This document shows, in pieces, positions 3,001 through 41,785 of a stretch of DNA of 64,000 bases; within the stretch, counting starts at the first letter, position 1, and every line of letters begins with the position of its first letter. The notes under the pieces were generated by a model. That model saw only the letters and a list, made by a program, of their open reading frames with translations. It was not told where the DNA came from and ran no database searches. The position numbers and the translations under genes were made by a program. Location: positions 248,001 to 312,000 of the forward strand of contig DF236961.1 of the NCBI GenBank assembly GCA_000708835.1. The letters run 5' to 3'. This stretch comes from Klebsormidium nitens. Lineage: Eukaryota; Plantae; Klebsormidiophyceae.

Positions 3001-6000
3001 TCGTTGAAGAATGGCTTTTGGGTGAAAGGATGTAAGATATTTTTCGGTTCCTTGGTGTCTTGCAGTATGACGACGCCATCAAAGACTGCGATGCGGCGGT
3101 GGAAAAGGGGCGGGAGCTTCGGGCGGACTACAAGTCGATAGCAAAGGCGCTCACACGAAAGGGCACGGCGTATGTCAAGATGGCAAAGACGGCGAAAGTG
3201 AGTTCCTGCGCTTCGTATTGTCCGGGCCATGGCTGCTTCAGAGACATGGCGTCACTTTGGTCCCACTAGTGGTTGAAAAGGAAGGAGCTTGGTGCATTTG
3301 CATTTGTGACATGCTAGTCGATGTTGCAGAACGGCCGCCATGCGGCCACTCAATTCTCGAAAGCAGTGCACCGAGAAACCACCGGTACTTACCCACAGCG
3401 TGAGTACGCCCCTGCAGCGGCGTTAGCCTACGCGGTTTGTAAGCGACAACGTCCCTGAAGCGACGATGTCTTACACTCTCAGTACCTTTTGCAAGTGGAA
3501 GTACTGAGACGCTCTCCATTGAGTCCCAGTAACTTAGTCAAAGTCATTTCTCCCTCTACGACGGTCAGCTCATCTCAACACGTCAATTTTTCTCAGGATT
3601 ACGACCCCGCAATCGAGGCCTTCCAGAAGGCGCTGACGGAACACCGGAACCCGGACACGCTCAAGAAGCTGAACGATGCGGAGAAGGCCCAAAAGCAGAA
3701 GCAGCAGGAGGAGTACTTCAACCCGGAACTAGCTGAGGAGGAACGAGAAAAGGGTGAGCACTCTGGTGTCAAAGCTTTGAGCCTGTGACGCGATTAGGGG
3801 GTTGACACTGGACTCGTATGCTTGGGAGATCTGACTTTAGTCTGACCACGGCGAGGCCCAGAAGGAGCTCAAGCGTTAGCTCCTGTTGTTCATTCCTGAG
3901 TTGCGGGACGCTTTGGCTTCGTTTTGGGGCTTCTTACATCAGGGTGGAGGTTTGCCTTTTGTCGATGACCTTCATGGGGATGGACGGTGTCCAGAATGAG
4001 TCAAAGAAAAGGAGCGCCTACCGCGCCGGCTTCTCATCCGAGCAAGGGTTCGGCGGAACGGACTTACGGGAGTGCATAAACAATCTACAGTTTGTTGTCA
4101 TCCGTTTTCAAGCTAATTTTGGCGTCAAAGGCTGGAAGATCGAGTTTTCTGAGACCCTTGAATTTAGGCCTGAAGCTGGTAGGAATCTTGAATACCTGTT
4201 GCCTTACGTGAGGGTGACGTTGCTTTAGCACACTGGCTGGCAGCCATGGCAGGGTCTTACTCGGGTTTGCGGTCCAGCTTGGTTGGCCCTAGGAATTGTG
4301 GAAGCGTGATACTTTTCCACTTTCTGAGAGATCTCTTGTGTCATTTCTTGAGACAGCCAACAACTTGGCTGCTTCGCTTTCAAGTCTCCAAGGCCGTCCA
4401 CTTCGCCTCCATATCTGCCTTCGTCTGCTCTTTAATCTCTCGACCACAAAGACAAGCTGCGACAGCAAGTTCGGGCATGAGGGTGCGGAGTCGGTTTGTC
4501 CACGTTGGTCGCCGAGGCAGACGTGCTGCACTATTGAACGTGAGAGTGGATCAAGATCTGCAACTCCCATAAAAGCTCATTGCGCACGCAGGTAACGACG
4601 CGTTCAAGAAGATGGACTATCCCGAGGCCATCCGGCACTACACGGAAGCGCTGAAACGGAACCCGAACGACCACCGAGTAAGTCCACTTGCAGTCCGCGT
4701 CCTTTTCAATTGTTCGGCTGCTTCTTAAAATCCGTCGCTGGAGTCAGCCCCGAGCCAAATCTCTGAAAGGGTTTACTTTTTCCTAGTGGATTTGCAAACC
4801 GGTCCAGATGGCATCCGACTTAAAATTTTGGGAGACTTGCTTGGATTACTTGCTCAGAAGACTTTCAGAGGATGTGGCGTCTTGGTCGAGTGATGATATG
4901 TGCTGACCAGTCGCCTGCTTCAGTCGCTCGAGCCGCTTCAGATTGCCCTCTCGGGCTTTCCAATCTTGGTCAGTCTTCCTTCTTTTTGAGGGTGCTTGTT
5001 CTGCTTGTCCTGTTCGTAGGACAAAAGGGAGCCGTTGTTCCATATCGTCAGCGTAACTTTGTATTCGACAACGTCGAATCATTCCTGGCATCTTTAGGTT
5101 TTGAGCGTGCCACTTACCCTTTACCAGCTCCACCCCTGTTTACTTCTTCAATGTTGTTCTTGCTGGGAAGTTCGGGCTATCAAATCATCCGGGGCTTACC
5201 AAACAGTTGCTTGTGGAGAATAGCATGACCTTCTCCAAGGGACGCCCGCCGACACCACAGTGGCTGCATCAAAGCCAAACCTACCCTCTTTGTATTTCCG
5301 CAGATTCATAGCAACCGCGCGGCGTGCTACACGAAGCTCGCTCTGTACTGGCAGACATCCATTTGACAAGCCCCTCTCCCCTCTTGCAGACTTACACCCA
5401 CTGCAGAGCGTGCTGAATCAAGTTGCTCTCTTCTACCTCGCTTTATTGTTTTGGAGAAAGCGAGCTCTCTTTTTGACGGCTGGGGTTTGGATCTGGAGTA
5501 CAGGAGCGCTTCATTACTTTTCAAAAATATCTTTTCAACAAATCCGTATTCCCATCGCAGATCTACAGCAACCGCGCGGCGTGCTACACGAAGCTGGGCG
5601 CGATGCCGGAGGGCCTCAAGGACGCGGAGAAGACGATCGAGCTCGCGCCCGACTTCGTGCGCGGCTACGAGCGCAAGGGCAGCGTGCAGTTCTTCATGAA
5701 GAAGTATGAGGACGCGCTCGAGACGTACCAGCAGGGCCTCAAGATCGACCCCAACAACCAGGAGCTCCAAGATGGCATCCGCAGGTGGGCGCTTCGTGCC
5801 CGCTGACGTCAGCACGGCGTCTTGCTGACGTCACCTCGGTTTTCGCCTGCCACCCATGTCTTCCCGCCGTTGTAACCCGTTGTGAAATATCCGAAGTATA
5901 TATTCGAGTATCGGAAGAGATGACGAACCTGCAACAGGCGGCTTCCTGCTGTGCCCTGAGAGGTGGGGTACTTGGTCTGGTGATCATCATTCCCGTCTTG

Positions 6001-6613
6001 CTAGGCCGTGTGGTTCGGTGGCTATTCCCGGCCTATGAGTGACCTTCTTGCTTCGCTTTCAGGTGTATCCAGCAGCAGCGGCGGGCAGCCACGGGGCAGC
6101 TCAGCGAAGAGGAGCTCAAGGAGCGGCAGGCGCGGGCGTCGCAAGACCCCGAGATTGCCGGCATCCTCCGGGACCCGATCATGCAAAACGTGAGCCACGA
6201 AGCTCGTTGCCCTATTAGAAGGTCTAACCGAGCGCTAACGACCTGAAAGTTTGGAAAAGTCTGTCATTGGGACCGGCTGACATCTGGGAATAACGTTTGT
6301 GCCCACTTGCTAGAATCCCCTTTCTGTCCGCCCTTGGTGGAAGAAATGGCCTACTGATCTGTTGAAGGCAACGTATTGGAAATCTCGAGATGTCTTTCAT
6401 TTTTTAGCATGTTGTCGACATCTGCTCTCGGCAATGACTGGGGAAGTCGATTTTATCAAACGTCTGTAGTGCTGAAAGCTGGTTTCACTCGTCATGCAGG
6501 TTCTGCGAGAAATGTCAGAGAATCCAAGGGCGGCAGCAGACCACCAAAAGAATCCCATAGTATGGAACAAGGTCATGAAGCTGATCCAGGCGGGCATTGT
6601 TCAAGTTCAGTAG
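1..6613 (+). CDS. HOP: Hsp70-Hsp90 organizing protein (HOP/STI1), 5' end outside window
   Basis: Exons <1-64, 787-898, 1613-1809, 2353-2712, 3066-3197, 3597-3753, 4592-4677, 5561-5784, 6063-6189, 6500-6613 join in phase via GT-AG. TPR1 end ([27 protein letters not shown]), DP1, EPEPEP linker, TPR2A ([13 protein letters not shown]...[10 protein letters not shown]), TPR2B ([23 protein letters not shown]), DP2 ([17 protein letters not shown]...[10 protein letters not shown]). Confidence 0.97.
5285..5366 (+). repeat. Intronic partial duplicate of the HOP exon 5561 acceptor junction
   Basis: CGCAG|ATTCATAGCAACCGCGCGGCGTGCTACACGAAGCT (pseudo-exon start 5304) vs CGCAG|ATCTACAGCAACCGCGCGGCGTGCTACACGAAGCT (5561); in-frame TGA at 5364-5366. 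Confidence 0.93.
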
Positions 6614-7880
6614 GACAGGACATGGTGAACCAGCGAGTGTAGAAAGGAGATAGTCAGCTTTTATCCACGTCAATGTGAGCAGATCCAGATGGCCAGCTTT
6701 GACTGACAAAGATCCAACAAAGCGCCTACTGGTCTGTGGAAAACCAGGACGCACTCGGACATCCTTGCGCTTGGTACAGATTGTGAGGACTGTGCAGCAG
6801 CGACCCTGGTCGACTGCAGAACAATATGTAGGGTAGCTGGCCGTTTGGAAAGATACTCTACAGTGTCCAGCATTCAGTGTCTCAGTGATGTGTGCAAGCT
6901 CTTCAGTGTGCCAGGATGCCAAATGCTAGAGAATGCAAGAAGTGCAGAACGGAATATTGATGCATTCAAGTCCAACCACAAACCCTTAAAGCTGAAGAAA
7001 AGTTGCTCTGCGCAGGAGAGCTAGTTTGAACACACCGTTTAAGCAAGCCTGTGCTTGGGCCATGTGCTGGAGTGCCTCTATTATATTGATCGAATGGCCC
7101 ATGTGGCGCCGCGCGCTACGGCTTGAAAAGAACATGTCCGGACGCAGGGCCCTGCTCGATTCCATGCATGACCGTTACAATGACGTGAGCAGGACGGGGT
7201 GCTGAGTCGTGCGGCAGATTTGCAAGCGGCGCCGCCGCGGTGGCCAGAGCTTCGAATCTTCAGGCGGCCCGGCCATGCGGGGCCTCCATATGCGCTGCCC
7301 ATGCGGATGTATCACGCCGGGTGTTCATAAAAGATCGAGTTTTTAGGGGCCTATAGATCGTGTGGAATGGTAGGCAAAAAGTAGTCGATCACAGATTTTA
7401 ACGATGTCCTAATCTGCAGATCGGAATCATGCCGCTTTTCATGTACGGCTCTGAACGCGGTGTGCCATGTACGGCTCTCACGCGGTTCCTTCGCATGGTA
7501 GCACGAGCTATCAGTGCCTAGAGCTCTACCTTCGATAATATATTTCACCTGATGCAAAGTCACTTTTCGAGCCAACTCAGTCAACTTGAACACGACAATA
7601 TGCAGTATAAGTAAAATGCTTGCCCATCATGCAAGATACTGGTACGCTTGGAATGACATTAGAAGTAAAACTCAACCTCTCACGGGAGATGTGCTGGCAC
7701 GTACTCGTACATTCTCGATGGGCTCTTTCTCTAACGCTCACTCCTTCCTGCCCAGGTAATCTAACACATCCTTCAAACACAGTGCAAGCACCCTGCGCAC
7801 CTAGCTACTTTCTAGTGCCAAGTCAGCGCACCCCATCGGAACCCGCATTGACCACCTGAGCTTCGACTTTACGTGTGATT

Positions 7881-9642
7881 CTACCTTCTTTTGCTCCCCT
7901 TTCCACCCTTCTTATCTGGAACAAGGAGCAGGCCGATAAAACCTGCGATGGCCGTAACTATGACCACGAAAGGACCATACTTGAAGACAAGTTCCTTGAT
8001 CTTGGCAAACTCCTGGCCAGGCTCTGTTGGGCGAAGCACGTCAATCGGGTAGGGAGGGCTGGACAAGACCGTCTGCATAAGAGTAGAGTCGCTTATTAGC
8101 AGACGGTTCGAGATCAAAAGGTGACAGCAATAGAAAGGATAGTCGAATCTACTTGTCGCACAAACAACAAGGATCGCAGGCAACATGTCCACTTGCAGTT
8201 GGAAAATTCATAATCAAGTGTGCAGCTCGCACTGTCTGTTCATCCAAGCAACCAAAGCTTGACAGGTTGTAAAGGGACCACCCGTGTTCTAACTTTGAAG
8301 GGGAACCAATTCCAGCTGCCATTGTGGAGAAACAGCTGACGAGCATCCATAGGCCAAGACTTGTGAGACGTTTCCATTTGCTTTGGTATGACCTTAAATC
8401 CGTACCACCGTGTTTACAGTAAGCAGAGGACTTGATACTATTTGCAAAATTTGGCAAGACCAACTTAGAGCGCCCAGTGCGAAATGCTGCATCACCGACG
8501 GCAGGCAGCTATAAGAATTAACTCGTTAGCCTGAATGTGGCCATGTCCCTCTACTCTGTCCCCAGCTTTCCCTCTGCATAGTTCACGAGTGATTTGAAAA
8601 GCACGAAGGGCAGAAAATGTATGACTAACCTGGGGGGTTGGCTTCGAGGAGTCCCTGAAGGTGACCTTGGCGGCGGGTGGCTCAAACATGCCTGGCGTCG
8701 AGGTTGTCACCACGTACGAGGTGGACACGCTGCCCTGAGGAACCAGCTTCTCCCAGGAGCCTGTCCCGTTGCCTTTCTTGAAAGAGAACTTGGCCTCGGG
8801 CCAGGTCTCATCGTCGAGCGTGACATCATAAGCAGAGCCGCCACCTGCGTGTATTAGCAAATCGTATGCTGATGCAGCTTTGGATCCCTGCCTCATCCAG
8901 GCGTTGCTTTGATGAACAGGAGGTAGCTCTTCCTACACTGCAGGAATTTCTCAACTATCCAACTTTAGCAGGGCCTCAGCTCTGAATGCCAGCTTGCAGT
9001 GGCTTTAGTATTGCAAGCAACCAGCGGAAATAGGACTGAACACTGTGGAAGTAATCTGTCCCTATATAAGCAGGTGAGCCTCTGGTGAGCGGCAAGTCCT
9101 TCTGAGAACCTTAAGTACGGGTGGTGTCCTTGACCAGCAGTGTTGAAGCACAATCCAGTCCTAAGGACCGGTTGCCACGAAAAAGCAATCCACTCTGCGA
9201 GTAGACTAGAGCTGCATTTTGTTGTCTTGCTGCAGAAGCAACAACTTCCATCTGGAAGCCACTGCGGATGGAACTTCCGAAAGTATAGATTCATCCTTGG
9301 CGGTAGCGATCCAATGTCAGAAGCAGCTTGAGACGATCCCATCAAAAGGTGGCACGTCATGCGCCATGATTAGGATGAGAAATACCACCAAGAGACAATC
9401 TGCCAGTCGGTGCAGGATCCATGGCTTCGATTCATACAGTCTTCTGACTAATGGAGTCAGACCTTACCTGCGTTGTAGATGCCTATTGACACTGTGATAT
9501 CCTCCGCATCCTTCACCCGCTTCACATTCTCGATCTTTTTGTGCACAACCAGGAACGGTTCATCCGCAGCCAAAATCGGTTGCGCAATCAGCACCAGCAA
9601 CACCGCCACCGTGCAACCCAGCTTGAAGCCCCTGAAGACCAT
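7881..9642 (-). CDS. SSR2: Translocon-associated protein subunit beta (TRAP-beta), 193 aa
   Basis: Exons 9642-9468, 8844-8630, 8072-7881 in phase. Signal peptide, then FLVVHKK...ITVSIGIYNAGGGSAYDVTLDD, NGT sequon, C-terminal TM helix (YGPFVVIVTAIAGFIGLLLV) and basic tail KKGGKGSKRR. Confidence 0.93.
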
Positions 9643-10392: not shown

Positions 10393-12822
10393 ATGTTTTC
10401 TGCGATGGCTAGGGCAACGTCGAGTGGGTCGCTTCTTTCGTGGCCCGCTCGCATCCAGACAGAATCCACCACTATCAGACAGAACAGCTGTCAGGCTACC
10501 AGTATCCCAGTTAACCACCTGAAAGCCGCATGTGCCAGCCAGTCCACTGGACACAAGCATCGATTCCTTACCTTGTCGTCAGCTTTTGCGGCAGTACCTA
10601 GTGGCAGAGGAACCTTGTGGGCCTCTTGCAGACCAGGGTGTCTGAGACTTAGAGGAAGGCGGCGAGCGGTGCAAGCCGATGCGAAGATGTTCGTACCAGG
10701 TATGGTGCTTGATTGTGGCTGAATGGTTTGAGTACCAGGAAGCAATGCTGTGAGTGAAAACGCGTCCTGTGCTCCACCTGAGGTTGCTTGTTGTTTGCAA
10801 GTCGTCCTTTGATGGTGAGTGTGCCTTATGTTTGCAATCTCACAGAGTTGGCTTGAAATTTTGGCTCAAGGATCACCGGCTGTCGTAGGTTCAGGAAAAC
10901 TTTGAGGAGTAACAAGTTAAACAGCTGGCCTCACAATTTTCCGCATGCTTGCAATCCCCCTGGACAACTATGTCGTGCCCCTTGCTTCAGACTCCATGCT
11001 GCTCTTGGATCAAACTGCTTTTAGGGGCCAGCTCATACCTGTATCTAGGTTTGCAGGAACTTTGCTAGAGGCAACTGCGGTGTAGATCCTGCTTGCTCGC
11101 ATGTTGGCCGGCAAAGCTGCGACAAACCGTTGCTCAAAGGATGCGAAAGAACCTGATCATCCCCTTCCTGCAGGGTTTGGAGAGAAGTCACCTGAAGCCA
11201 AGGCAGCCGACTCGCTTCACAACTTCTTCACGTTCACAGCGCTCAAAATCGTGTTGTCCCAGCTGCAGAGTTACAACCCGGATGCCTATAAGGTATGGAC
11301 ATTCCTGACCAGTCTTGCTGAATTTCCATGTTAGGAACGGGGGTGTGCCGGCGGCTGAACCTGACAAGGCATCTTTGTGGTTGTACATCAGCAGACTGCA
11401 ATTCCAAGACTCTTCTGGCACAGGGATACTTACGATGCATGGATTCCCATTCTGCCATCCTTACAGTTGCTCAATTCCGAGTTCTTGTATTGTGCATACC
11501 GACCAGCTTTGAAGTTAGTGATCCAGCAACAGTCAAATATCACTTTCCGCAGGAAGTCGCCGATGAAGAGGGTGGTTGGTTTATGCATTGTGTCACAAAA
11601 GCACCTCTGCTCAAAACTCTGTACCGTGTACTTTTTCAGGATCTGATGGAGTTCGCTCAAAAGTCGCCCTTGAAAGATGGTGACGAGTTTGTCCACCAAC
11701 TGATGCGGGTGTCTCCCCAGCACAAAACGCTGGCCATGCGGATCTTGGAGGTAAGGATCCGTTCGTTTCTTGTTTAATTGTCTATGAAAGGCAGGTCTGG
11801 TCCAAAGTAGCACCTAAAAAGTATGGTTGCATGGGCTGTTTCAAATTCCTTATCAACAATTTCGTTCGTCCAGTAATAGTCGGCTTTACATTTCGTATGT
11901 GAATGCATTCAAGGTCTTATAGAGGTCCACTTCCTTTGGAGGGGGGCTTGGATTCGTTGTTTCCTTTGGAAGCGTTTACAGCTTGCTTCATAGATTGGGG
12001 GCAAAGTGTTTTCAAGAAAAGGAGAAACAGACGTTTCCCAGGACTTTTCTGTACTGACTCTCTGTCGACAGCAGACGATATTCATAGACCTGGTCAGAGG
12101 AGTTTGATTCTCGTTAGATCCTCGTGAAGAAGCATGTAGCACGTGACGCTTTGTAGGCCTTCGATGCTTTGAGGCCATGGAAAGGTGCGTGCAATCGATG
12201 TGGCAAGTTCGTGGAGAATCGGACAGGAAGAGGACTTCAAAGAGTTCTCTTGGCACTTGCTTGTGGTTGTCGGCTTTGCAGCGCTTGTAAGACCTTTGAG
12301 CCAATTAAAATTCACGACATCACCCTCGATTGCCTTCAGTGATCTCTCTCGACAGTACCTTAAGAGACTTTGACAACTCTTGATAAAAGGAGGCCGTGAA
12401 CAACGAGAAAATAAACCAAGTCGAGTGATTTCCTTCTCTGAAGCGGTCTGCCGATGTGCTAAGGCCTCATTGCCTTCTCAGGTCCGGTCAGCTTATGCAT
12501 CGGAGGATTTCGAGTGGGACAACGTTCAGAAACTTTCCAAGAAGGTGAGGATGCCTGCTGCCCTAGACAGAAGCGTAAGCATTGGAGTAAATGAAAGCCT
12601 GTCCACGGATGTGCATTTCTGGTGTCTGTTGGAGCTGTTGTCCGACTTGGATTCATGAGCCGGCTTATCGGATGATGTGAGGAGAGATTGGGCAAGTCAA
12701 TTGTTGATTGATTACCCGCAATGAGTGACTGTAACGTTCTTGCTGCTTCTCTGCAGCGCATGGAAGAATCGAACACCAAGGTGTTGAGGGAGTTTTTGCA
12801 ACAGAGTAGTGGGATGAGTTGA
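10393..12822 (+). CDS. RBCX1: Plastid Rubisco assembly chaperone RbcX (RbcX1 type), 221 aa with transit peptide
   Basis: Exons 10393-10699, 11174-11292, 11640-11750, 12482-12544, 12757-12822 in phase. Ser/Ala/Arg-rich N-terminus, then MFVPGFGEKSPEAKAA, LHNFFTFTALKIVLSQLQSYNP, DGDEF, LAMRILEVRSAYASEDFEWD, NTKVLREFL, typical of the plant RbcX1 clade. Confidence 0.93.
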
Positions 12823-13276
12823 GTTCGGATTGCAGGCAAGAGCGTTGTCGTGGGTGGGGTTGTGACGTTTGTCATTATGATTGGAGGTGATGTTGTTGCC
12901 ATTGTAACAAGGATAGATGGTTAGACTCGCAAGCTGAACATACTGGACATAACCAATTCATCCAGCTAGGATAGACGCGGTTGCACCATTCATTGAGATG
13001 ACGTGAACTTTTTGTGGTGGTCAGCTTAACACTTTGCTATCTGCACAAGCCGCAACGTGGGGAGATCAGCTTTAGACTGGGGGCTGCTTGTCTCTTGTAC
13101 AGAGCTCAAATAGAACTAGCACTGCAGCTCATGAAACACGCATGCTCGTCTTGGAACGCTACGATCAGTGAGTCTAGATGCAATTGCGCGATTCTGCCTC
13201 GGCGGTAAGGTAGAGGGTATCAATCACCACACATTAATGGCGACCTAAACTAATGATGAGATGGGAAGAATAAATC

Positions 13277-13495
13277 ATTTCTGCAACACTCCGATAACTC
13301 TCGTGTGACCTAAGAGCTGTGTGACCTAAGATAGGCACCCGAGGGACGGGTGGGGTTGGTATGGTGGTTAGGGTGGGTTGGGGTGCGGAGCGGGTGATTA
13401 TTCGGGTTAGGTTTTTAGTTTGAAGTGCCCGGGTAGCTCGTATCTTAAGTCACACGCCCGTTAGGTCACACAAGAGTTACCGGTATTTCTGCAAC
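13277..13495. mobile_element. MITE-like element: ~43-bp imperfect inverted arms around a G-rich core, flanked by an 11-bp direct repeat
   Basis: Left arm 13291-13333 CCGATAACTCTCGTGTGACCTAAGAGCTGTGTGACCTAAGATA; right arm 13441-13483 reverse complement CCGGTAACTCTTGTGTGACCTAACGGGCGTGTGACTTAAGATA. ATTTCTGCAAC at 13277-13287 and 13485-13495. No ORF. Confidence 0.65.
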
Positions 13496-13656
13496 CACTT
13501 GTACATAGAGAATATGTTGCATTGAAGGCTTGCTGCACTAGAGCTGTACTTTGAAGTTTGCACGGAGCTTTTGTTACATGGCAATTTACTTAGAATCCGG
13601 TAAAGCGGCTGCTGCTGCCACGCGACCGCGCGCGCGCCAGCGGTTTCGATCTACCA

Positions 13657-14000
13657 NNNNNNNNNNNNNNNNNNNNNNNNNNNNNNNNNNNNNNNNNNNN
13701 NNNNNNNNNNNNNNNNNNNNNNNNNNNNNNNNNNNNNNNNNNNNNNNNNNNNNNNNNNNNNNNNNNNNNNNNNNNNNNNNNNNNNNNNNNNNNNNNNNNN
13801 NNNNNNNNNNNNNNNNNNNNNNNNNNNNNNNNNNNNNNNNNNNNNNNNNNNNNNNNNNNNNNNNNNNNNNNNNNNNNNNNNNNNNNNNNNNNNNNNNNNN
13901 NNNNNNNNNNNNNNNNNNNNNNNNNNNNNNNNNNNNNNNNNNNNNNNNNNNNNNNNNNNNNNNNNNNNNNNNNNNNNNNNNNNNNNNNNNNNNNNNNNNN
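13657..14000. other. Assembly gap (344 N)
   Basis: Run of N. Confidence 1.
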
Positions 14001-14219
14001 CTGACCATACGCATTAAAACCTATTACCCGGCCTGGGTTTGTTAGGTCCTTATACGCCGGCACCCATGTGCATGGACGGCAAGACGGTTCAGGTTGCACT
14101 GCGCGGTTTTGGAAGTCCATTTGACTCTATCCCGCGCACGTCGTGTCAGCCGTAGTCCGTCACTGTCGGGATTCGGGACATCCTTCCAGAAGTTAACCCG
14201 GGTTAGACCCACGCCCGGC

Positions 14220-17200
14220 ATGCAAGCCTGCTGCACCAGCAGAATTGAAGAAAAGGTATGAACAGTCTGGCACCCCGGGCTGATCAGCTGCAGCACCGGG
14301 ACTAGCACACCGACAAACGAAAGGGGAATCCTCGCCCCTTCCGCAGCGGATCGAGAATCGAACACACGACCTTTCAGTCCAACCCCTTCTAGTGTTAGCA
14401 GAATTGAAGAAGCTCTAGGACGTGAACTAGAACTTGAAGTTGAAGTTGAAGCATAGAGGTTCTCCGACCTCTACTACGGTAGGTCCTTGCACAAGTTGAA
14501 GAAGGCGCGCATGCAAGCCTGTTTACGGATCCGAGCTGTAGACTCAAGTATCAGAGCGTTCCTTAGAGCAGGTGTGTAGGGGCTCCTCAAAAGTCCAAGA
14601 AGGTGCGATCGCTTGTGGCAACTGCTTTTTTCTGAAGCCCTCAGCCGTGAAAGGGTGAGAGCGTTGATCCAGCTTCCGACTGGAGAACTATTGGGGCTAA
14701 GACTTCTCTTAAGTCGACTGTGGCTGCATGCCAATCAAGAAAGCTTTGCCTGCTCCGGTGGCCATTTGAATGCTTTCTTTGACTTGTTGCTAAGTGGTGG
14801 CGGAAAGAGAGGAAAGATCCTTTGCTTCAGGTATCCCTCATCAAGGTCTGACATTGCTGCTTGAGATACTTCAGGGGCAGTGACTATCTCGTGTGCTCTC
14901 AAGTTCAGCTGAGACAGGCCATCCTGGCTCCAGGATCTTGCATTTATTTTCTTTGATGCTTGGTATGATGCATATACTGGACTCGGGCTTGGCCTGTTAT
15001 GGTAAGCTGGCTGTCAGAAGGTTTGGAGGCCATCCTTATTTCCACCCCTTATGTCGTTGGAAGTTGACCGTTTTTCAATGATTGAAGACCAAGCAGGGAC
15101 TTCAACGATATTAGACTAAGGAGGCAGACTTTTCAGACACAATGATAGAGATTGGTGCGTTTCAGGCGCTTTCATACGATGGCAGTAGGAGTTTGCTGCC
15201 CAGCTTGGCTGTTCATGATATTGTCGCTTCTCTGGGTTTTATCATAGAACTGAAGTGCAGGAACTGGCCTCTTAATTGGACCAGTCTTGAATTGGGACTC
15301 AGATTTCCCCTCCCAGAAGTTATTCACTTGTCTATCGTCCAGATGTCCACTATTGACCTGATCCTTCACTTAGCAGGCCTTAACTTACAAAGGTGTTCGA
15401 CCTTGCAGGGACTGCGATGGAAGGCCAAGCGGGCGTAGCCCCTTCCGTGACTATCGACGTCCCTGCTGCGAAAGGCTACCAAGCAGATGCTTCGGCCGGT
15501 TCGGCCAACGGTCCTTCGGTAGGGATTGAGAAACATTAGACGTTTCTTGTAGGCCTTATTGTATGTGCGGGTGTGTTCCTAGCTTAGTCTATTGCCAAGT
15601 TTGAAGGAAGTTTGTCAGGTTTTTTGTAGATATGTGCAGATATGTTGATCTCACTAGGGCTTATTTTTCATTTGTTGAATGTAATCTGGGCACGGAGTCT
15701 TGCCCTTGGTTACAAGATTTGTTGTGGTGACGATTCGTCAAAACCTAAAAGTTGGACGCATTTTGCAGGAGGATGTGAGTGCATACAAGCAAGATCTGGA
15801 GTCTGCTGAACGGGAGCCATGTGACGATCTCGATGAGATGGGCTTTCTTTCTGTTAGCGGTAAGCCCTGCTGCATATTGGGAACGCTCTCCAATCAGTCC
15901 CTTGAAAACCGCTGCCATTAAACCCTTTGCAGATCTATCTTTGGACGTTTTGGAAGCATGGCCATCTCCAAAACTCCTGTCTTTTTTCAGGTACCCCTTG
16001 AGTTTATGTATAATGAGTTGAGGAACTTGGGATGTGTATAAAGAGTTGAGGAACTTGGGCGTAATGCTCTGGCTGTCAGCAACGTTTTTCATGTCTGTAC
16101 TTGTAATACACATAGTTTTGACCACGTTAGTACACATAGGCAGTCAGTCCAGGGGATTGGAAGCCAGACGCTGAAGTTCAACGATCATTATTATTATTAT
16201 TCAGCGGAACAGAAGCCAGACACTGAAGTCAACAAAACTTGCGTGGTATCAGATCTGGGAGATGTTTTCTAGATTCCGTAAAGATGCCGCCAGGTGGCGT
16301 TTTTGACGAACGAATCATGTGCCGTTACTTCGTTTCTGTACGTAAACATCTTCAACGAGATTCTTGTAACGGTTCCTCAGATGCTGTCACTCTATCGATC
16401 CCGCTTTTCTTTGTTCGAAAAAGTTACAAAACGGCGAAGGATCAAGAAACGAACAACGGTAAGGATGTGTTTGTTGGATCATTCAGGTCGGGACCTACAA
16501 GGCCGTCAAGTGGTCGTCATCATTGGGAAGCTTCTGCCCGCGGGTGCAACCTCTCGAGACCGCTTGAGAAAGTGAGCCTTGCCCTTTTGGATTCCCGCCA
16601 TCCGCTTTGACATGTGAGGCGACGAGTTTCTATTGAAAGCGAGAAGACCCACTGCACTCACTCAATCTCACTTGTCCGACAATGGAAAACTGTTCGTACT
16701 AGATCAATCTTTTGCTCGTCCGAATCGATCCGTCTTCATCTGAACGACAGTGGATTGTATAGATTCGGCCGTGGCATTTCGCAAGCTTTCGATGTTAAGG
16801 CTTTTCCGGAAAGATTGATATCACAAAAGCTCATAGGGTTTACCGCACTGCACTCGATTTGTTTTCCCAAGCAGATTGGAAGCGTTGTATTCCTCGTGTG
16901 CCCACAATTCATACGGCGACTGTTTTTCAGGCATTGATCACCATATGTGAATGACGCTGTGAGTTCGCCCTGCAGGTATGCCATACAGAAGCTGCATCCT
17001 GTCGTATCGGCGGGCAGCTACTCGATTTTGTTCGTTAACACCAATGCGACATTTCAGGTAAGAGGACGAAATTGGGGATCGTTCTTGCCTCTCCGAAATG
17101 TACGATAGCCAGGGGAGCAAGTCTTGAAATTCTCTTTAAACCGTGGCCTTTTCTCATACACTCAGCTGTGCTCGCTCAGCGCGAGGATGTGTCCAGCAGG

Positions 17201-18783
17201 GTCCCTATCAACAATCCGATTTTGTTCCACCCAGCAAATCCCGTCTCAACACTTTACAGCCATTGTCGCTTGGTTCTGTCTCAACCCAACTCGTCTGTCC
17301 ATCTATCAGACCCCTTAGAACTTCCAGTTTTTGTCCAGGAAAAACCCGCTCGGTTTGTCCTAATCGGTCTCTATCTCCTCAAAGCATTCAATCTTAACCT
17401 TTTCGTCCGCGCTCAAGCGAACTCCCGGGCGTCCTCTGTCTCATTGAGTCATTAACCCCTCTCATTAACTTTCTAAAGAACTTCTCGAGCTAGTCATCTT
17501 AACCCTCTTTTTAACCACCCAGGCAAACTTCCCGGGCGTCCTCTGGCTCCGTTGCATGTAAAGTTTATGTAGTCAACTCAACCTCCTTGATAACCACCCC
17601 AAAAACCTCCCCGGAGGTGTCCTCTGGCTTCGTTTCACACATCCTACATTGTTTTTAATCTTGACCCCTTCCTTAACCACCCAGGCAAATTCCCCGGGCG
17701 TCCTTTGGCTCCGTTCCACGTTCGAGGCCCTCCCTTCCATGTACCGGGCACAGCTCGGGGCAGTCTATTGCCTACACCCTACCTTGGGGCTGCGCCTAGT
17801 GCTCGCCGCGGTCGCGCCTTGGATGAGTCAAGGGCTCTGGCAAAAGCTGGTGAGTGCCACGTGGCAGGACGTTTTGGGCGCCGTGTGCTGTCTAAAGCGG
17901 TAAGTTCCTTGATGGAACGGAGCGTGTACCGTACCAGCGTTTATTTGCGTCTAGAAATGACCAGTAAGGTCGCCGGAAAAGTTCAGGAATGTATGTAAGA
18001 TGGTACTGGATTGATAACGGTGCTTTTTAGCAGGTAACATTGGGTCTGGCGGACTCTTGAAATGTTTCATGAAGAAGTTTCTGGCGTCGAATCGACGAAG
18101 ATAGACCTTGTTACGGTGTTTGCTTTCGCCACCTGAAGGACATCGTCAGGGGTCACGTAGGGGAAGGTAGTTATTTTCGGCTCGCAAGCACAAGCTTTAT
18201 GAGGCTGGCAATAGCTCTTTCGGACTTTGGCTTCAATGGACCGTGTTTCGCACGCTGCCTTTTTTTTGCGTCCTGCAGAGTCGTCGTTGATATCTTTTGA
18301 GGAGCGCGAACTGAAAGTCGGGCGATGCTCAAGACTTGTGTGCTTGACAAAGTCACCCTTGATTTCAAACAAGCCCTCAGACGGAGCGCGATATGGACGC
18401 AAACCGCTCTCGTGTGCACTTTCTCGGGGGTAACACGACACTCGATCCGGTTTTTAGATTTCCTAAACACGACATATCGAGAGCCGCTTAAGCGCGTTCG
18501 TTCAGAGCATCAACCCCTCTTCTTGCCAATTGACTGACGTCCTGTCGCGCTTTTCCCGACTTAGGTATACGTCAGCCGAGTGGAATTCCTCTTGGAACAC
18601 GTGGCAGCCGGACAGGTCGCCCTGCCCGACTTTGTCCTGGAGCACGACCAAGAACTAGAGGGGCGGCCTTTGATGGACTACGGCGTGGAAGCGGACGGCG
18701 ACCAAGCGGCCATGTTTAGGAGCGCCACCGAGGGGGTGCCTGAATTGAGAGAACCGTTGGGAGTTTATCATGGGGCAGGATGA
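14220..18783 (+). CDS. CRAL-TRIO_2/BCH-domain protein (plant GDAP2-like, At4g35750/At3g10210-type); first exon tentative
   Basis: Well supported exons 15769-15859, 16487-16571, 16976-17057, 17685-17849, 18565-18783 join in phase: LDEMGFLSVSGRDLQGRQVVVIIGKLLP...YAIQKLHP...VYCLHPTLGLRL...VYVSRVEFL...LPDFVLEHDQELEGRPLMDYGVE. Exon 14220-14255 (MQACCTSRIEEK, phase 0, GTATGA donor) is only a guess at the start. Confidence 0.85.
17411..17720 (+). repeat. Four degenerate tandem copies (~80-105 bp period) of the CRAL-TRIO exon 17685 acceptor junction
   Basis: Motif TAACCACCCAG|GCAAAY..CCCGGGCGTCCTYTGGCTCCGTT recurs with exon-start equivalents at ~17417, 17523, ~17603 and 17685 (functional). Confidence 0.9.
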
Positions 18784-20443
18784 GTTTCATGTTGTACAGG
18801 GGTTTGACATTTTTGAACGGTTCATTTGGTAGTGTCTTATGTATCTGTACAGCATGTCAGCACTTTGAGTGGACCGAGTTGTCATTTTTCTTGTCGTCTG
18901 TACATTCATGCCGGAAGGTCGACACGGAGGAGATGAGTTGTCGTGATTTTGAAAGCATAGCTGTAGCGAACTCGCTTCCGAGTAAGCCGTTTCGGAAGCC
19001 CGAACTTAGGCCACAAGGCGTGTGGAGGTTGCAGAGAGTCCATTGGCTGCTGTCGTGACCCAGATTGAATCGAGAAAAGTGACGGAAAGTTTCATGCCGG
19101 AAAGAGTTGACATCGGCCCAGTTGTGAGAGAACCGCTCAAGTGAAGCCGAGACGTATGTACAATGACTGAAATGCAACCCAGCCGGCTGGTACTGCGACT
19201 TCAATTCCCTCACTGACCCTTTGTTGGGAAAGGCAGTCGCTCTAGTAGAGACGCCATGGCCGTAGGTCTGCCTTTGCAAGACATGATTTTTTCGCAATAT
19301 AGATTCGATGATCAATAGATGGATATGCAATTTGATAATGATCTAGATTCGGCCGTCTCAAGTGCCCAATTGCATATGTGGACGCTCGCCGCGGGGCCGC
19401 CGGCTGCAAGGATAATCAACGGGTTAATAGTTAATTCACATAAGGATCGCAATCGCAGTAACAAATCGCAACGCAGTGCCGGATGTGGCGCGTAATTGCT
19501 GACCATGCGAAGAGTCTTGTCAAGCATCGACTCTGCAGGACGACATGCAAAAGGTGCTAGAGAATCCTTTGCATCAGAGCTCCCGTTGGCGTTCATCGGA
19601 ATCCCAATGGCGTTCGATCGCCACACTGGGTCAGTGGAGTTAATCTGCATGCGATGCATATGAAACATAAGCCTGATGCGGAGTTGCGTGCCCGTTCGGC
19701 GACAAATCTACTACTTTATCAAAAGTCAGCCAGATGCATTAGCTGGCACGCATATGTACGCATGGCCGCGCTCAATCGCATGCCAGACTAACAGTCCGCC
19801 GCGCGCGCCATGTGCGTAACCTGCATTGATCGAACCACTTATGATCGAACATGGAGCTTGCAAGTTCGGACATGCAACTTGAACATGTTCGGAGCGCCTG
19901 GTCATCCCGTCCGCCCGGGCAGCAGCTCATGCAGCGATGCGATGCATGGGCATGATATATATCGTGAACTTAGTATTCAATTAACTCTTGACGATGCTTC
20001 TGAGATTGTATCCCTGCGGAATACTAGCCTCCGCCTCTTCTGCTTGCGCTTTCAAGACATGGTCCTTTTTCAGATTTGCGGTCCCAATTGTCACTTCTAT
20101 ATCGCAGGCATCGTGATCACTTCGTTGGCCTTTCGGCTCATTACAGCTCAGGTGTCCTTTCAACGAAAACGCACTCCTCAGCAGTTTGCTTATCCACAGC
20201 TAGTATACAAGTTTCCGCAAGAAATCTGACAGAACTTCTGCGCGCGTCACTGCTGACTGGCCCTGATGTTTTTTGTACACTAAAAAGCTAGCACTCGAAC
20301 GCCGCTGCGAAGGTTTGTCGTGAGGCTATGCCAAAAAGGCCGCAAAGAGATATTTACACTCAGTTCTATCTACAATCCGCCGTTGCCAGGTTCGCCAAAA
20401 CCCGAGCCTGACTGACCTATCAAAAGAAGTAAGCCAAAGCTTC

Positions 20444-33400: not shown

Positions 33401-34094
33401 CTGTAGTTGCGAGCAAGTCTGCACATGCTCATATTTTCCCCTTATTCTATTCTGCAGTTGGTCCTGGACGAGCCCACCAACTACTTGGACCGGGAGTCGC
33501 TCGGTGCTTTGGCTGGTGCCATCCGGGAGTATGGCGGCGGTGTTGTCATGATCTCACATAACTCTGGTGAGTCCCTTCCTTCATCTTTCTCCTGTATCTG
33601 CCCCGCTCATAAGCCCCTTACGACCTTTGTTGTCTTCTGCCTCGTGGATTTATCGAGGCTGCTTCTCTTTGTGCTCGACCATGCTGTGCATCGATGTAGT
33701 CTATCCCGATTTTTGGGAGTGGGATGTGTTGCACAGAGTGGGTGAGTTGCTTTCATGTCACAATCCGCAACAGTTCAAAAAGCCCTCAACAGTCCGTGTT
33801 CTGAACGAAACATCCCTCCATCCTGCAGAGTTCACCAAGGAGCTGTGCGGCGAGACCTGGTTGATGGACGCTGGCAGGCTGACCGCTACGGGTGTGCCCG
33901 AGTACCTGACTGGCCAGGGTGACAAGGTTGAGTGGAAGCGGGAGGAGACCATGATCGATGCCTTGGGTAACGAGGTTAAGATCAAGCAGCCCAAGAAGAA
34001 GCTCAGCAGACAGGAGCTGAAGAAGAAGGAGAAGATCCGGAAGGCCAAGCTCGCTCGGGGTGAGGAGGTCAGCGACTCCGAGGATGACGAGTAG
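27402..34094 (+). CDS. eEF3: Translation elongation factor 3 (eEF3; HEAT repeats + two ABC domains with chromodomain insert), 1035 aa
   Basis: 14 exons in phase: 27402-27527, 27793-27963, 28194-28445, 28750-28899, 29226-29540, 29813-29947, 30176-30427, 30726-31034, 31262-31590, 31891-32104, 32375-32628, 32961-33186, 33458-33566, 33829-34094. HEAT region, ABC1 [30 protein letters not shown]2 GPNGAGKST with chromo insert ([12 protein letters not shown]), [17 protein letters not shown], basic tail ending SDSEDDE. Confidence 0.96.
33198..33259. repeat. Perfect 30-bp tandem duplication in eEF3 intron 12
   Basis: TGTCTGCCTCTGCCTAGCCTGGTTTTGCGG at 33198-33227 and 33228-33257. Confidence 0.95.
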
Positions 34095-35834
34095 ACGGGG
34101 TTCTGAGGGTTTTGGTCGGAAGGAGTCATGGCGAAAGCCGAACTGAGTCGGGGGGAGGGGTGTTTTTGAGTCACTGCATCGCGCAAAGCGCATGCCGGGG
34201 GTCCTGGGGGAGGGGAGGTAAAAGGCACTGCATAAACGAGAGTTTGATTACATTTGTCAAATGACAATATATAAACAAACCATTCTTTCGCTGCCAAGTG
34301 TCCGGGGTTCTGTGTTGGGACTGGTAGGGCAGATTGCCTCGGTCCACACGGGACAGGGGTGAGGGGGGGTACAATAGACGGGCATGGGGGAAGTCAGTAG
34401 AGTGAATTCACTTGGCAGCTTCCAAGGTAGAATAAACTCCGCTCTGCAAGCAGAGATCAAACTCGACAGGAAGAGTGTTCAAAGTGTGGTCCAGTAAACT
34501 ATCTCCGTCTGTTGAGGCTGACAAAAGCATCACGCAGTAACAGTAACCATTTTAGTATACCATACAATTCATTGAACTTGCAACTTGAATTGATTGTTAC
34601 AACTTTGTGCGCTGAGATTGATGTTATTCCAGTCCCTTGTCTGCTTTCACACGCATACATTCCGTTTCACCAGTTACACTTACAATGAATTTTGTGTAAT
34701 GATTTGAAGTACAGATTCTTAGAAAGTGTATGTATTCAACGGTATGTATTAGCAAAAAATGCCCTGCACTAAATTCTCTACTGTTGACGAGTACTGGGGG
34801 GATGTTTGAATGAAATACCAGCGTCTACATCATATCAGGCTGGTAGAATCCTAATTGACTAGTGCAGTTCGATGCATCCAATTATGCCTCATGTTTTGTG
34901 TTCATTTACCGTCTGCGCGCCATACAGCTTAATTGCAAGTGCATCATGCATGTCAAACATTGTCCATGATTAATCAAGTATGCGCGTACATGATGAACAC
35001 AAGGTATTAATACATGTGTTACAGCGTGACAGTGTCACGCTGGCGCGCCTGCCATCCGTGTATTGTATACGTATACAACTTTGGTAAGATTGTTGGATAT
35101 AACTTGCACGTGTTGCAGTCCGGGTTCATTTTACCTAATTATAATACGCTTGTGACGCATGCAGGGAGAATGAGTCGGAGTCTGCGCGTCAGAGTGCAAC
35201 TATCAGAAGAAACCAGGCTTATGAGCTATGGCTGACAATTCCGAGTCGTACTATGGCGTACGGTAATTCAGTGCAAGCCGAGGCTTGGTGTCACTGCATG
35301 ATACCAATCATCGACGTGAACACTGATGCATATCATGCGAAGGGACTGAACATAAGGCCTCCCATGCATAGCTTATAGCCGCCATGGGCCCTGTACGTGA
35401 TTAAAAAGCTAGATCGAAACATGGTGAAGCTTCAACGTTCTCAGGAAGCCTTCAAGACTACAATTGGACCATGCAGTACGTATGCGCTACTTCAAAGATC
35501 CTTGGCAAAAAAGAGAACCTCAGCGAGTTACTGAGCTCCCTGTCAACTGGCAAACAATCATCGCGGCAGCCTCCTCTGACTTTCACCAGTGTTTATCAAG
35601 CTACCTGAAATTTCTGACGTTTTCGTTTTAAATGATCCTCCAAAGAATTTTCTCTGAGGCGAGAATGTATTGTGTTCCTTGCAGAAAATCTCAGACACCA
35701 ATAGAGATTGTTTTATCCATGTAAGCTTATCAAATGCTTCGCAAGCGACACACTGCCATCGGTGTCTTCCATCGCAGAGAATGGTCATCGAAGACGTCTA
35801 CGACCTCACTCTAGTGCAGGTTATCTGAACTTAC

Positions 35835-38033
35835 GGGCTACAAGTTGCGAAGAATGTCCGTCGCTTGCGGTTACACGATAGGAAACGAGTCCAGGAGTGT
35901 GAGCATTGAGAACCCAGTTGATACCCCACCTGCAATAGACCCAAGAAGATGTACTGAGGATCTTCAGAGAACTTACAAGAGGTTTGAACCAAGACTTATA
36001 CGGCCTCCCTCGGAATCATTCAAGATCCTTAAATGCAATTCACAAAATATCCTAGCTAGACTTCCTGAAAGCAAGAAGGGTTGAGCGCCTGTGTTGAACG
36101 ATTGATTTCAACGGCCAAGCTCCTGATTTGCAGTGTTAACAGATGTGTCATTGGCTGCCAGCCACTCCCACCGTGAGCTTCAACGAACTTGACCGGACCG
36201 GCACAGCCGACGTTCTGCAAAGACAAAACGCTGTCACATAATACCAGATTGATCTGCGTAAGCCGTCTTCCCGAGTCGCAAGGTGTGCTCGAGTGGAGTC
36301 CAAAGTCTGGTACAAAAACGAGTAACTATGAATTGATCCTCTCCGAAGTTCTGATGATGAACAACCCTTAAGATGAGGATAGTTGGTCTTGGTCAGGTTT
36401 CGATCGAAGGCAAGAAGAGCACTGTCAAGATCTTGAGACAGTTGCATCTTACCTGAACGAGGATTGCGAAGTATTTAGGGTTGGTGCCAGGATCCATGCG
36501 GATTACGATGTTGCTAGTTGTCGGGCATTTGATCCTGCCGAATGGCCAAGTGTCGAGGTTATAGCAAGCTGTAATGATGGTTCAGCAAGCTCTTAACATG
36601 TATAGTCAGATTAACTCTTAAGGAGGGAGGTCCACGGCTTCGTGCAATGCCTCAATCACTTGACGGCTGGTGTGTAATTCGTAAGTACCTCTGTAAGCCA
36701 AGCCGGTAGGCTAAGGCATTCGAAGCAATTCAAAGCAGTCAAGAAGCATAGGGTTAGGCGTGCTGACGGTTGAATCTCGATGTCGATCACACCAGCAGTA
36801 GGATTGGCAATCTGAGCGAAAGCGGAGGAGCTAAGATCGAAGTGATATGTTGCGCATTCATCCGTCGCGAGAACCTGCAAAAGTCGAAAAGGACCGTGTC
36901 TCTAGAGTTGCCTTCTCCAGTTTCATTAAAAATGCATTGTTTGAAAGCTTGGTAAAGCTCACCAACCGATCCTGGCTACTCACACAAAGACTCCTTTGTG
37001 GCTTGCGAAAGAGTGTGCCCGGACGAAAGCCTTGCCTTATCGAGTTCTTCAAACATAATCGAACAAGATATAACGGCTTGCAGCAAAATCAGACCTTTTT
37101 CTGCTGCAACTGTGTATAGGTACTTCACCTCGACACTGCCGGGCTTGCAGAAAGACTTCGAGTTGCTGCCCGGCACGCAAGAAACGACGTAGCACTGGCC
37201 GCAGCCGAGGCCGTTCTGCACAGTGCAGCACATTCAAGGGTGAGTTCTTTCATCTTTCACCTTTCACCATATTTTCTATATGCTCACTTTGTGTTCAATT
37301 TGAGCAGATTTTTTCGACTTTGAATCGTCTGGACTGGAGACAAGTTCAGCATATCCTGCTGAGAAGGACCTGAACCCGACCTGAACCGAAAGCTTCATCA
37401 AGACAGGACCTTGCTTGCACGGTGAAATTTTGAGGGGACACTTATATGATCCACTAGGTTAGGAACAAGAACGAGAATATGGAGGTATAAGTGCCCATAC
37501 AGAGGCAAATCAAGGGACTGATCTGCCTTACCTGGTATAGGTCGGGGCCAAGAGCAACAATGTTCGTTTGTGGTACGTTGCCTGCGCACATTGAGAGAAC
37601 GTCTTGTCAAAAGAAGGATGGGTCTTCAGGAAGACCGGAACACTCCAGGAGATAAGGGAGACGAAGGAGCCAGAACCAGGTTAACGAGCGCTGAACTTCT
37701 CTTAGCCTAGGAATCGACATCGATGAGCGACTTACCATAGCCACATGCTCCTCCTGCAAAGGAAAAAGACAGTACTTTCAGACACAGCTTCTCATGATGC
37801 TAAATAGGGATATCCAATTGACGAATCTGAAAGGCTTCTCTTTTGGCGGTTCAAAGACGGAGTATTCGCCTCGAGCTGATGATTGGATCAGAAGGAATTA
37901 TCCTGAGATATTTCACGGCAATATTTGTCTCACCGTTTCCAGCGCCGTAGTAGAAGGTTGCAGTAGCTCCAGATGTGATCTTGTTTCCGGAAGCAGTGTA
38001 CTTGCCTGAGACATATGCAGTAGACACCAGCAT
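35835..38033 (-). CDS. Expansin (DPBB/GH45-like + CBM63 domains); true start and last exon unresolved
   Basis: Exons ~38033-37934, 37753-37736, 37581-37532, 37215-37129, 36874-36768, 36534-36453, 36214-36141, 35929-35835 join in phase: ATATFYYGAGN-GGACGYG-NVPQTNIVALGPDLYQ-NGLGCGQCYVVSC...C-VLATDECATYHFDLSSSAF...-IKCP...YFAILVQ-NVGCAG...WQPMTHLWGINW...SYRVTASDG. A hydrophobic signal-like stretch extends upstream to an AG near 38060. Confidence 0.88.
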
Positions 38034-38954
38034 GATCAAAGAGGCACAGATTAAGAGCAGCTGCCGGGAGAAACCAATGACTTTGGAGCCAGCGGGAACT
38101 CTTCAGTTGGTGTTCACGGAAAGCTTGCAGGCGCTTATTGGATCGACAGGAGAAAAAGGGGAGCTTGGAAAGGCGAGCTTGGGAAGAAGGGGTGGAATGA
38201 CCGAAGCTAGAAAAGGAAAACAGTGGAATGAAGATTCCTAAGTTGTCCTAAGGCTAAGTGACCTTCTTCTGTTTTTATGAAGTCCGAAGCTGCAAAAACG
38301 ATAGGGACATTCATGAAGTGATTCAGTCGATATGGTTAGAGATTCGACGGCTTCTCGAGTTTCGAACTACATTCTATGTTTTCAGGCCAGCACAGGAGCT
38401 TCGACGTCGAATCGAAAGGAATCCCCTGCTGTATGCAGCTGCAGACTGATCAAGACACACCCATCTACGACGAAACCATGTGATCAGAGAATATTGAGAA
38501 CTTGAGACTGCACACTTCAAGCGGCATAAGATGTGGAATCTGGAGCCGTTGCTGCAGCCTTAGTGCGGCACTAAGTGGAGTTGCCAATTCTCTGAGACCA
38601 GATCGCCGTTGGGCTTGATCGAGCTTGGGCTTCAATTAAAAACGAAATCAAACCGAGCCCTGTTGCTTAAGTCTGTGCCGCAATTCACTTAACAAACTTG
38701 AAGCGTGCAATTTCACTTCAAATAATTCCTTCGAAGCGGTGCGAAGTGGGTGCCTCTCGTCGGCAGACGACCCCGCCTTCAAAAAACTGGATTTGAGGCA
38801 GTGAATCTGCACGAGATTTTGCCCGTTTTTCTCTGAAGCCATGTCGGCGGCCGGCTCCTGCTCGTGAAGGTAACAGAGCCTGACTGAACAGAGCTTCTCC
38901 GGATTCGCTCATCTGCCTGCAAAACACCTTTGAAGCACTCAATCATCTCTACCT

Positions 38955-41785
38955 ATGGCGCAGCACGAAGAAGCGGCCCGGTTTTTGAAGATGATCAACG
39001 AAGCAGCTGCGAACAATGCGCGAGGAGGTAATGACAGATATCCTCGAAGGGATCCGTTCGTATCGTGTGGAGATCAAAAGCCATCCCCTTTTGATGCCAC
39101 CAAACGGTGGCAATGTGACATATCTGGCTCTTCAGATCTGAGCAAGTAGCATGCTGTCCTTTCGAGCATAAAATGCAACCCAAAGGTGCATGTTTGCGGC
39201 ACGTAAATACTCTTGCTTGAAGTCAAATGGAATCTGTCCATGGACTAGAGCTTATTTTAAAGTTGAACAAGTTTGTCGATGTGCAGAGCGCCTTTTGGAA
39301 AGCATGCGAAAGGAGAAGGCATTGCTGCGGGCAAAACTGGATCAAGCTTCTGCCGAGTTTGAGTAAGTAACGGCTGTCGCCCCTTCCAATCATCAATCCC
39401 GAGGCGTAAGAGTGGAAGCTGCTTAGTGCGCAGCTGATTTATATTTGAAGCTGAAAAAGGCAGCTGATGCTGTCTTACCTCTCGCATGTTTCGTATTTCA
39501 CAGAATGAGCTGGTCCAACAGTGGTCTTTCGCAGGTCAAAGAAGACCGACCGCCGCAAGTCACAGGAAGAGTACAAGACTCTGAGTGCTCAACTCCTATC
39601 GATTCAAGCCACCGTGTCCACGAAAAAGGTAAAATGCGCACATCTCAAAGCATCTCCGCTGGATCAAGCAGACATAGTCTCGTTGGGAACCTGATTGAAC
39701 CGGAGCGAAGCAAGATGAAAGGTTCCGTCCTTTTGCTTGCCAGAAGCTGCTACCGCATTGGTATCTCATGGTAACTGCAACAATGAGACCAATCATACGT
39801 CTTGGAAACATTTGCGTCTTTCTAATACAGGCAAGGATTGCCGTTTTGCAAGAGGAACTGAGTCTGCTGAGAACGCGCTCGAACGCCTTTGAGGTAAGTT
39901 GCTGGAGGGCTTCGTCCCTTGAACAGATCGGATGTTCCCCTCGTTAACCATGATGGTTCGGCCGTCATCTTCCGTTAGTCGACTAAGCATGTATATCGTG
40001 TAACCCCAGACTTTGTGGATGTGATTTGGATGCTCGTGCTTCCAGGAGGAGAAGGACAACCACAGGACACTCCTTACTTCGAAGATGCAAATCCTCAACG
40101 AGACGCTGAGGTGAGCATAATTGAGTGATACGGGTTTCCTTGCAAGGCCGTCGTCATCTTTCTATATATATTTATTGTAGCATACTTTTATCCTATATTC
40201 CCTGGCAGCATTACGCCCGAAGTGATGTTTTGCGAACGAAATAGTGATTTAGAAAAGAAGTTTTCCGCTTGCTGGATATCGAGTCTTCTTACGGTAATGC
40301 AGGGGTGCAATGATCGCCTTCATGTTGTTGACTTCTTAGGTTTGTCGTATGCGCTTAATCCAAATATTCTAAACTGACGCCTCGCCGAGAATCCACTTCA
40401 GGCGTCTACACTCTGAAAACACGGATACAGCATTGAGGGAGGAGCTCCGAAAGAAGCAGGAACAGCTTGCAGTCCTCGAAGGTGACTTAAATGTACTGAT
40501 CATTCTTGCTGGAGTTTGAAGACGGTCCACACGTTGGTGAACATACTGAGTAGTCCTGTCCTTTTGACCGCTTCAGATCGTCTTCGTTGTCCATCAAAGT
40601 ACGGTACAAGAGAAAGTCTGAGGGGCACGCTGTTCCCGACAAAATTGAGTCTGCGGTTGCAAGCTTGTAACTTCGAGAGCAGAAGCACTAAAATGGAGGA
40701 CTCGAGCTGATTAGCGCGGAATCTCATTCTTTTGCAGAGAAGGCAAAAGTCTACGAACAGTCTAGTACTGAAAACTTGAATGAGGACGATGTGTCGACAA
40801 CAAAATCGGAGATAACGGCCCTCGAACTGGAGAAAAAGGAGACGGATGCCTACATCGCGAATCATAAGGAAACTTTGTCAGCAAAGAGAGAGCACAACAA
40901 GATTGTCATCAAGCAATTGAACGAGGTAAACAATTGTAGGCTGAATGATAAAGATGCCCTCTGCCAGCTTGATCAGTCGTTTGTGAAGAACATCTGGATT
41001 GCGCTGCTTCAGATCTACCTGGGCTTCTAATTGCTTTCAGAGACCGGAGGCAAGAGATAACAAAGTGTCTGTGATCAAGGGTCAATTTCTGCGTCTAGCT
41101 TAAAAGTGACACATAGATAAATAGGCAAATAGGTAAATACATACACAGGTAAATCCTCGATCAAGAAAGCAGTGCACTTCCGAAACTGGTGCCGGACACA
41201 TCCACTTGCAGCAAGCTGGAAGCTTACGAACGAAACACTTCAAACAACAAGAAGCAGCTCACACCATGAGATGACGGAAGGCTTCCTGTTGGCTCGTGTC
41301 TGAAGGTGCCGAAAGCCAATGTCTACTTCTTCTGCTTTCCAACCAAGGACTTGAGTCCCGCTAATCTACTCAATACAACCGGTCTGATCATCGAACGGAA
41401 GTTTTATGCAGGTCAACAAGCAGAAATTTGAGAAGCAGAAGAAGCTCGAGCAGCTGCAGCACCTCGAACGAGAGTACGCAGAGCTGGAGAAACTTCAAAG
41501 GTGATGCATCTCGTCCTTGTCGTCCTTGACTTGCTTTTCAGGTTGTAAACTATTGCTCCTCTGCTTCGGCGAATCTCGGACGATCAGAGACCAGAGAGCA
41601 TGCTGTGCTTAGACAGTTCGATGACAAGTTTCAATCCCATTTGCTGCAGAGATAGCGGAATTGTTCAAGAAGCATTCACAGTGGCGCACAAAGACTTCCA
41701 GAAGCGGAGCGCTTGTCCGAAATGTGGAACGAACGCTTACGGCAATGCCGAAAAGGATGCTGGGCAAGCAAATCAGGAAGAATGA
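38955..41785 (+). CDS. SCEP2: Coiled-coil protein with C-terminal CxxC, similar to Arabidopsis AT3G28370 (SCEP2), 287 aa
   Basis: Nine exons in phase: 38955-39027, 39287-39362, 39535-39628, 39831-39893, 40046-40110, 40402-40481, 40738-40925, 41412-41500, 41650-41785. Heptad-rich; RGE at residues 23-25, ARIAVLQEEL, C-terminal DFQKRSACPKCGTN. The gene model is solid; the name rests on my recollection of the AT3G28370 sequence. Confidence 0.75.

Follow-up and report, generated by a model that had tools for sequence, protein, structure and literature searches.

The centre of the synaptonemal complex of Arabidopsis is occupied by two small coiled-coil proteins, SCEP1 and SCEP2, which form a heterodimer (PMC12283363 and PMC13170185); SCEP2 is attributed to Vrielynck et al. 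2023 as a plant central-element protein in PMC12283363 and PMC12711579. Proteins of a similar type are known from mouse (SYCE2-TEX12, SYCE3) and yeast (Ecm11-Gmc2), all of them described as short and helical, assembling through coiled coils and quick to diverge (PMC12283363). In rice, the 286-residue BVF1 is a meiotic ‘OmpH/coiled-coil’ protein, and a Klebsormidium homologue of it was claimed at 13% identity and without predicted coiled coils (PMC5447885). A published PSI-BLAST survey recovered SCEP3 throughout the Streptophyta, including Klebsormidium nitens (GAQ79536.1), and a second SCEP3 paper made use of the K. nitens homologue A0A1Y1HSJ6. The same survey tabulated SCEP1 and SCEP2 species by species and failed to find either protein in Marchantia and Taxus, which indicates that tracing this family to such depth is not easy.

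The gene described here lies on the forward strand at positions 38955-41785 of a 64-kb window of the K. nitens genome, the whole stretch of DNA that was analysed. The DNA is identical to positions 286955-289785 of scaffold DF236961.1 in assembly GCA_000708835.1, and a public gene call, KFL_000120450, covers the same span; its product (GAQ78399.1, A0A1Y1HMH6) is listed as a “hypothetical protein” of 266 residues. An earlier note on this DNA, which had rightly guessed at Klebsormidium as the host, had proposed a nine-exon reading frame of 287 residues with consistent phases, and rebuilding the model from its coordinates returned exactly the same positions, exon count and length: a coding sequence of 864 nt, consisting of 287 codons and a TGA. 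All eight introns are of the GT...AG type with good flanking consensus and consistent phases, and an in-frame TGA is located 24 nt 5' of the ATG. The note had also remarked that short exons kept the gene out of the list of open reading frames; the longest exon indeed encodes only 62 residues, and nothing conspicuous appears in that list.

A second copy of the gene was found on a 22.8-kb contig, hereafter L001, of the Logan assembly of run SRR23617307, which represents a second Klebsormidium-like genome. Tblastn and a global alignment show all nine exons in L001, arranged in the same order and differing in neither length, phase nor GT-AG borders. Exon 1, which carries the ATG at 38955, spans 38955-39027 (73 nt) and shares 96% of its nucleotides with L001 8329-8401. 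It is followed by exon 2 at 39287-39362 (76 nt, phase 1; 87% identity to L001 8655-8730), exon 3 at 39535-39628 (94 nt, phase 2; 90%, L001 8917-9010), exon 4 at 39831-39893 (63 nt, phase 0/0, 21 residues; 87% and ungapped, L001 9185-9247), exon 5 at 40046-40110 (65 nt; 89%, L001 9461-9525) and exon 6 at 40402-40481 (80 nt; 84%, L001 9833-9912). Exon 7 (40738-40925, 188 nt) includes the least conserved stretch, with 79% nucleotide identity over the exon and 45 of 63 residues identical, and exon 8 (41412-41500, 89 nt) is the most conserved coiled-coil segment, with 92% nucleotide identity and 29 of 30 residues identical. The final exon 9 (41650-41785, 136 nt; 84% identity) encodes the end of the third helix and a non-helical tail, and closes with the TGA at 41783-41785. 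Between the two genomes the exons are thus 79-96% identical without a single gap, whereas the introns reach 28-54% and the flanks about 40%; together with the shared exon lengths and phases, this places the nine-exon model far beyond chance. The locus is an intact, real gene, mis-annotated by one exon.

The joined 287-residue model was used for translation, for the comparison with L001 and for the estimation of substitution rates. The two proteins are 83% identical, and the coding sequences differ at 25, 25 and 69 sites of the first, second and third codon position; synonymous changes are in excess (p = 4e-15). A comparison of dN and dS had been suggested in the earlier note; carried out on these two copies, it gave dN = 0.084, dS = 0.473 and dN/dS = 0.18, and KFL_000120450 is under purifying selection. 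The strongest constraint is seen in the N-terminal 81 residues, 76 of which are identical, and in exon 8; the weakest is seen in exon 7 and the last 17 residues. It should be noted that strict orthology of the two copies is an assumption: No sequence is shared between the flanks of L001 and the 64-kb window, so that the copies are orthologues whose genomes were rearranged or, alternatively, close paralogues. L001 has entirely different neighbours at 1-8300 and 11300-19556, among them an EXS-domain fragment at 12884-13123, and the two genomes thus do not share their local gene order.

In K. nitens the gene sits between two ordinary housekeeping genes, an upstream one on the same strand that ends at 34094 and encodes an eEF3-like ABC-F protein of 1077 residues, and a downstream one on the reverse strand that occupies the sequence from 43038 onwards and encodes an RME-8/DnaJ-C13-like protein of 2819 residues. 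The 4.9 kb between the eEF3-type gene and KFL_000120450 (about 34095-38954) have a G+C content of 0.46-0.48, as against 0.52-0.56 nearby, and contain neither a public gene call nor an open reading frame of more than 100 residues. Within the gene, the introns compare with L001 at random level, except for intron 7, the longest, which includes two conserved blocks on the forward strand at 40975-41054 and 41190-41229, each about 70-78% identical to L001 and neither belonging to an Rfam family. They could represent a small RNA, an element that acts in splicing, or an exon of the alternative or poison type. Nothing was returned when the gene and the whole window were scanned with Rfam and for tRNAs.

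The coiled-coil character claimed in the earlier note is borne out by composition and by structure prediction. The 287 residues include 42 E, 33 K, 32 L and 31 A, with a single proline and two cysteines, and E, K, L, A, Q and R together make up 62%. AlphaFold2, run without an alignment on the 266-residue form, predicted three long helices at residues 2-50, 56-139 and 145-241, followed by a non-helical tail (mean pLDDT 82). The break between the second and third helices (GAQ78399.1 residues 140-144) maps to the acidic Ser/Thr stretch of exon 7, which is poorly conserved. In the numbering of the 287-residue protein, the breaks between its three long alpha-helices come near residues 51-55 and near residues 160-166, the latter being the acidic Ser/Thr linker, and the short tail that follows carries one conserved CPKCG knuckle (41714-41728, forward strand). 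The protein has no cysteines other than the two in this knuckle, and the surrounding RSACPKCGTNAY is identical in L001. Such an architecture is most likely that of a structural subunit that would pair with itself or with a partner through its coiled coils.

As to a specific role, the most likely one is that of a Klebsormidium counterpart (orthologue) of plant SCEP2, to which we give somewhat less than an even chance; the link to SCEP2 and to meiosis is unproven. The product of KFL_000120450 would then pair with a SCEP1-like protein of the same genome in the central element of the synaptonemal complex. This assignment is plausible because the protein is of the right type: At 287 residues and almost entirely helical by composition and AlphaFold2, it is small and dominated by coiled coil, and SCEP2 is likewise described as a small protein of almost nothing but coiled coil in PMC13170185. 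It is also plausible because the genome encodes another central-region component, the published K. nitens SCEP3, and because the protein diverges fast and has no detectable distant relatives, which fits what is reported for synaptonemal-complex proteins. The likeness to mouse SYCE2-TEX12 and SYCE3 and to yeast Ecm11-Gmc2 is one of protein type only, as neither sequence similarity nor fold-specific similarity to them was detected in the PDB and Foldseek searches.

A closer tie to Arabidopsis had been drawn in the earlier note from individual residues. The comparison was made with AT3G28370, which we take to be SCEP2; the resembling residues, such as ARIAVLQEEL, are matched to what is presumably the Arabidopsis sequence. 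The matching motifs are short and lie within low-complexity coiled coil, and a literature search returned no mention of AT3G28370 or AT1G33500, of the Klebsormidium accessions or the SRA run, or of these motifs. From the cloning primers tabulated in the second SCEP3 paper, the two ends of Arabidopsis SCEP2 can be read as MAGIDTQ... and ...NSVQVLT-stop. These termini are unlike the algal ones beyond the initial Met-Ala, and they neither confirm nor refute the proposed internal motifs.

An about even chance is given to a different origin, namely a coiled-coil protein of the Klebsormidium lineage that has no relation to SCEP2 and might serve, for instance, as an adaptor of the cytoskeleton, the basal body or the nucleus, or in vesicle tethering; its likeness to AT3G28370 would in that case be that of heptad-repeat proteins in general, or an artefact. 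The K. nitens genome surely holds many more small coiled-coil proteins. The database searches, for which the query was either a single exon or the 266-residue GAQ78399.1 as a proxy for the full length, agree with such an origin in that no homologue outside Klebsormidium was obtained by exon-7 HMMER, word-index or metagenome searches. Exhaustive HMMER with exon 7 found Klebsormidium-type proteins only, GAQ78399.1 itself at 100% identity and a 118-residue reading-frame fragment from Logan SRR23617307 at 71%. The word-index search of 5.8 billion clusters, with the whole of GAQ78399.1 at E <= 0.01 and E <= 10 and with residues 1-102, returned the query alone, and metagenome scans with GAQ78399.1 and with the exon-7 alignment gave pattern matches only and no relative. 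In Pfam there is no family for the exons or GAQ78399.1, each of which gave only sub-threshold noise, spread in the case of GAQ78399.1 over four unrelated families. The PDB sequence search showed no relative, matches to NUP85 and TRM61 being rejected at E ~1-2, and Foldseek gave no PDB match at E <= 0.001; its neighbours, all non-significant, were generic helical proteins (BAR domains, SMC arms, SNAREs and axonemal proteins). A match between an Alcaligenaceae MAG and the Arabidopsis SCEP2 forward primer, from a scan of prokaryotic contigs, was rejected as chance on reading.

The published survey that did not detect SCEP1/2 in Marchantia and Taxus points in the same direction as these searches. 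Against this, the word-index searches require shared exact 5-mers and therefore say little on remote coiled-coil homology, and the failed searches for relatives as a group depend on shared 5-mers or 8-mers, to which such homology is invisible. Furthermore, the presence of a published SCEP3, a central-region gene, in K. nitens leads one to expect a SCEP2 partner somewhere in the genome. In a collection of 15 billion proteins, the 90% cluster of GAQ78399.1 has a single member, which stems from the genome annotation, and includes no transcript-derived copy; this is compatible with rare expression, though only weakly.

ARIAVLQEEL, the motif judged most Arabidopsis-like, falls in exon 4, and it is exactly the 21 residues of this exon (39831-39893) that GAQ78399.1 lacks. 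The exon adds three heptads to the second helix. In both genomes it is bordered by canonical splice sites, and the introns on either side of it are 39-43% identical to L001; since the exon itself is 87% identical and ungapped, it represents a conserved coding exon missed by the public model. We conclude that exon 4 is real and that the true product probably has 287 residues instead of the annotated 266, with the consequence that homology surveys based on GAQ78399.1 miss 21 conserved residues. It is unlikely that exon 4 is instead a true cassette exon, with both the 266- and the 287-residue forms being made. The omission from the public model and the symmetry of the exon would fit this, as its skipping would disturb neither the frame nor the register of the coiled coil (63 nt, phase 0/0, exactly three heptads, 21 residues). 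Against it, both species have strong, consensus-like splice sites here, the exon is as well conserved as the constitutive ones, and exons of 63 nt are often overlooked by gene predictors.

A further alternative concerns the tail. The protein could be a dimeriser of the zinc-hook type, in which the CPKCG knuckles of two chains share one zinc as in the Rad50 hook, so that two coiled-coil rods would be joined end to end; we consider this improbable, and it would be compatible with either a SCEP2 or a non-SCEP2 identity. Both Rad50 and the algal protein combine a CxxC of the CPxCG type with long coiled coils, and the CPxCG motif that contains both cysteines of the latter, its only ones, is unchanged in L001. 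Exon 9 gave weak zinc-ribbon matches in Pfam (E 0.1), and the ESM Atlas returned generic helical, bacterial hook or zinc-ribbon clusters; PF04423 (Rad50_zn_hook) is present in the nearest feature clusters, but at 0.84-0.85 these are leads only, being below the useful level of 0.9, under which scores arise by chance a third of the time. Against a Rad50-type hook, neither the single exons nor the 266-residue protein match the PF04423 profile at E <= 10, the algal protein lacks an ATPase head, and the CPKCG motif is located in the C-terminal tail beyond the last helix and not at the apex of an antiparallel coiled coil. Identity with BVF1/p31comet was rejected, as the algal protein is nearly all helix and has no OmpH or shared Pfam match.

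We know of no described sexual cycle for Klebsormidium. If the SCEP2 link is true, all four known plant central-region proteins (ZYP1, SCEP1, SCEP2 and SCEP3) would go back to the ancestor that Klebsormidium shares with land plants, and an alga without a described sexual cycle would have a complete and selectively maintained synaptonemal-complex kit. The inference of cryptic meiosis is not in itself new for streptophyte algae, given that meiotic toolkits have already been published for Mesostigma and Chlorokybus and that K. nitens SCEP3 is published. The SCEP1-SCEP2 pair of the plant central element would, on the same condition, be older than the land plants, and its reported absences from Marchantia and Taxus would be losses or detection failures; surveys that started from GAQ78399.1 would have searched without the best-conserved segment of the protein. 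The gene would then offer a concrete handle both on the search for meiosis in this alga and on the way in which the fast-evolving proteins of the synaptonemal complex change.
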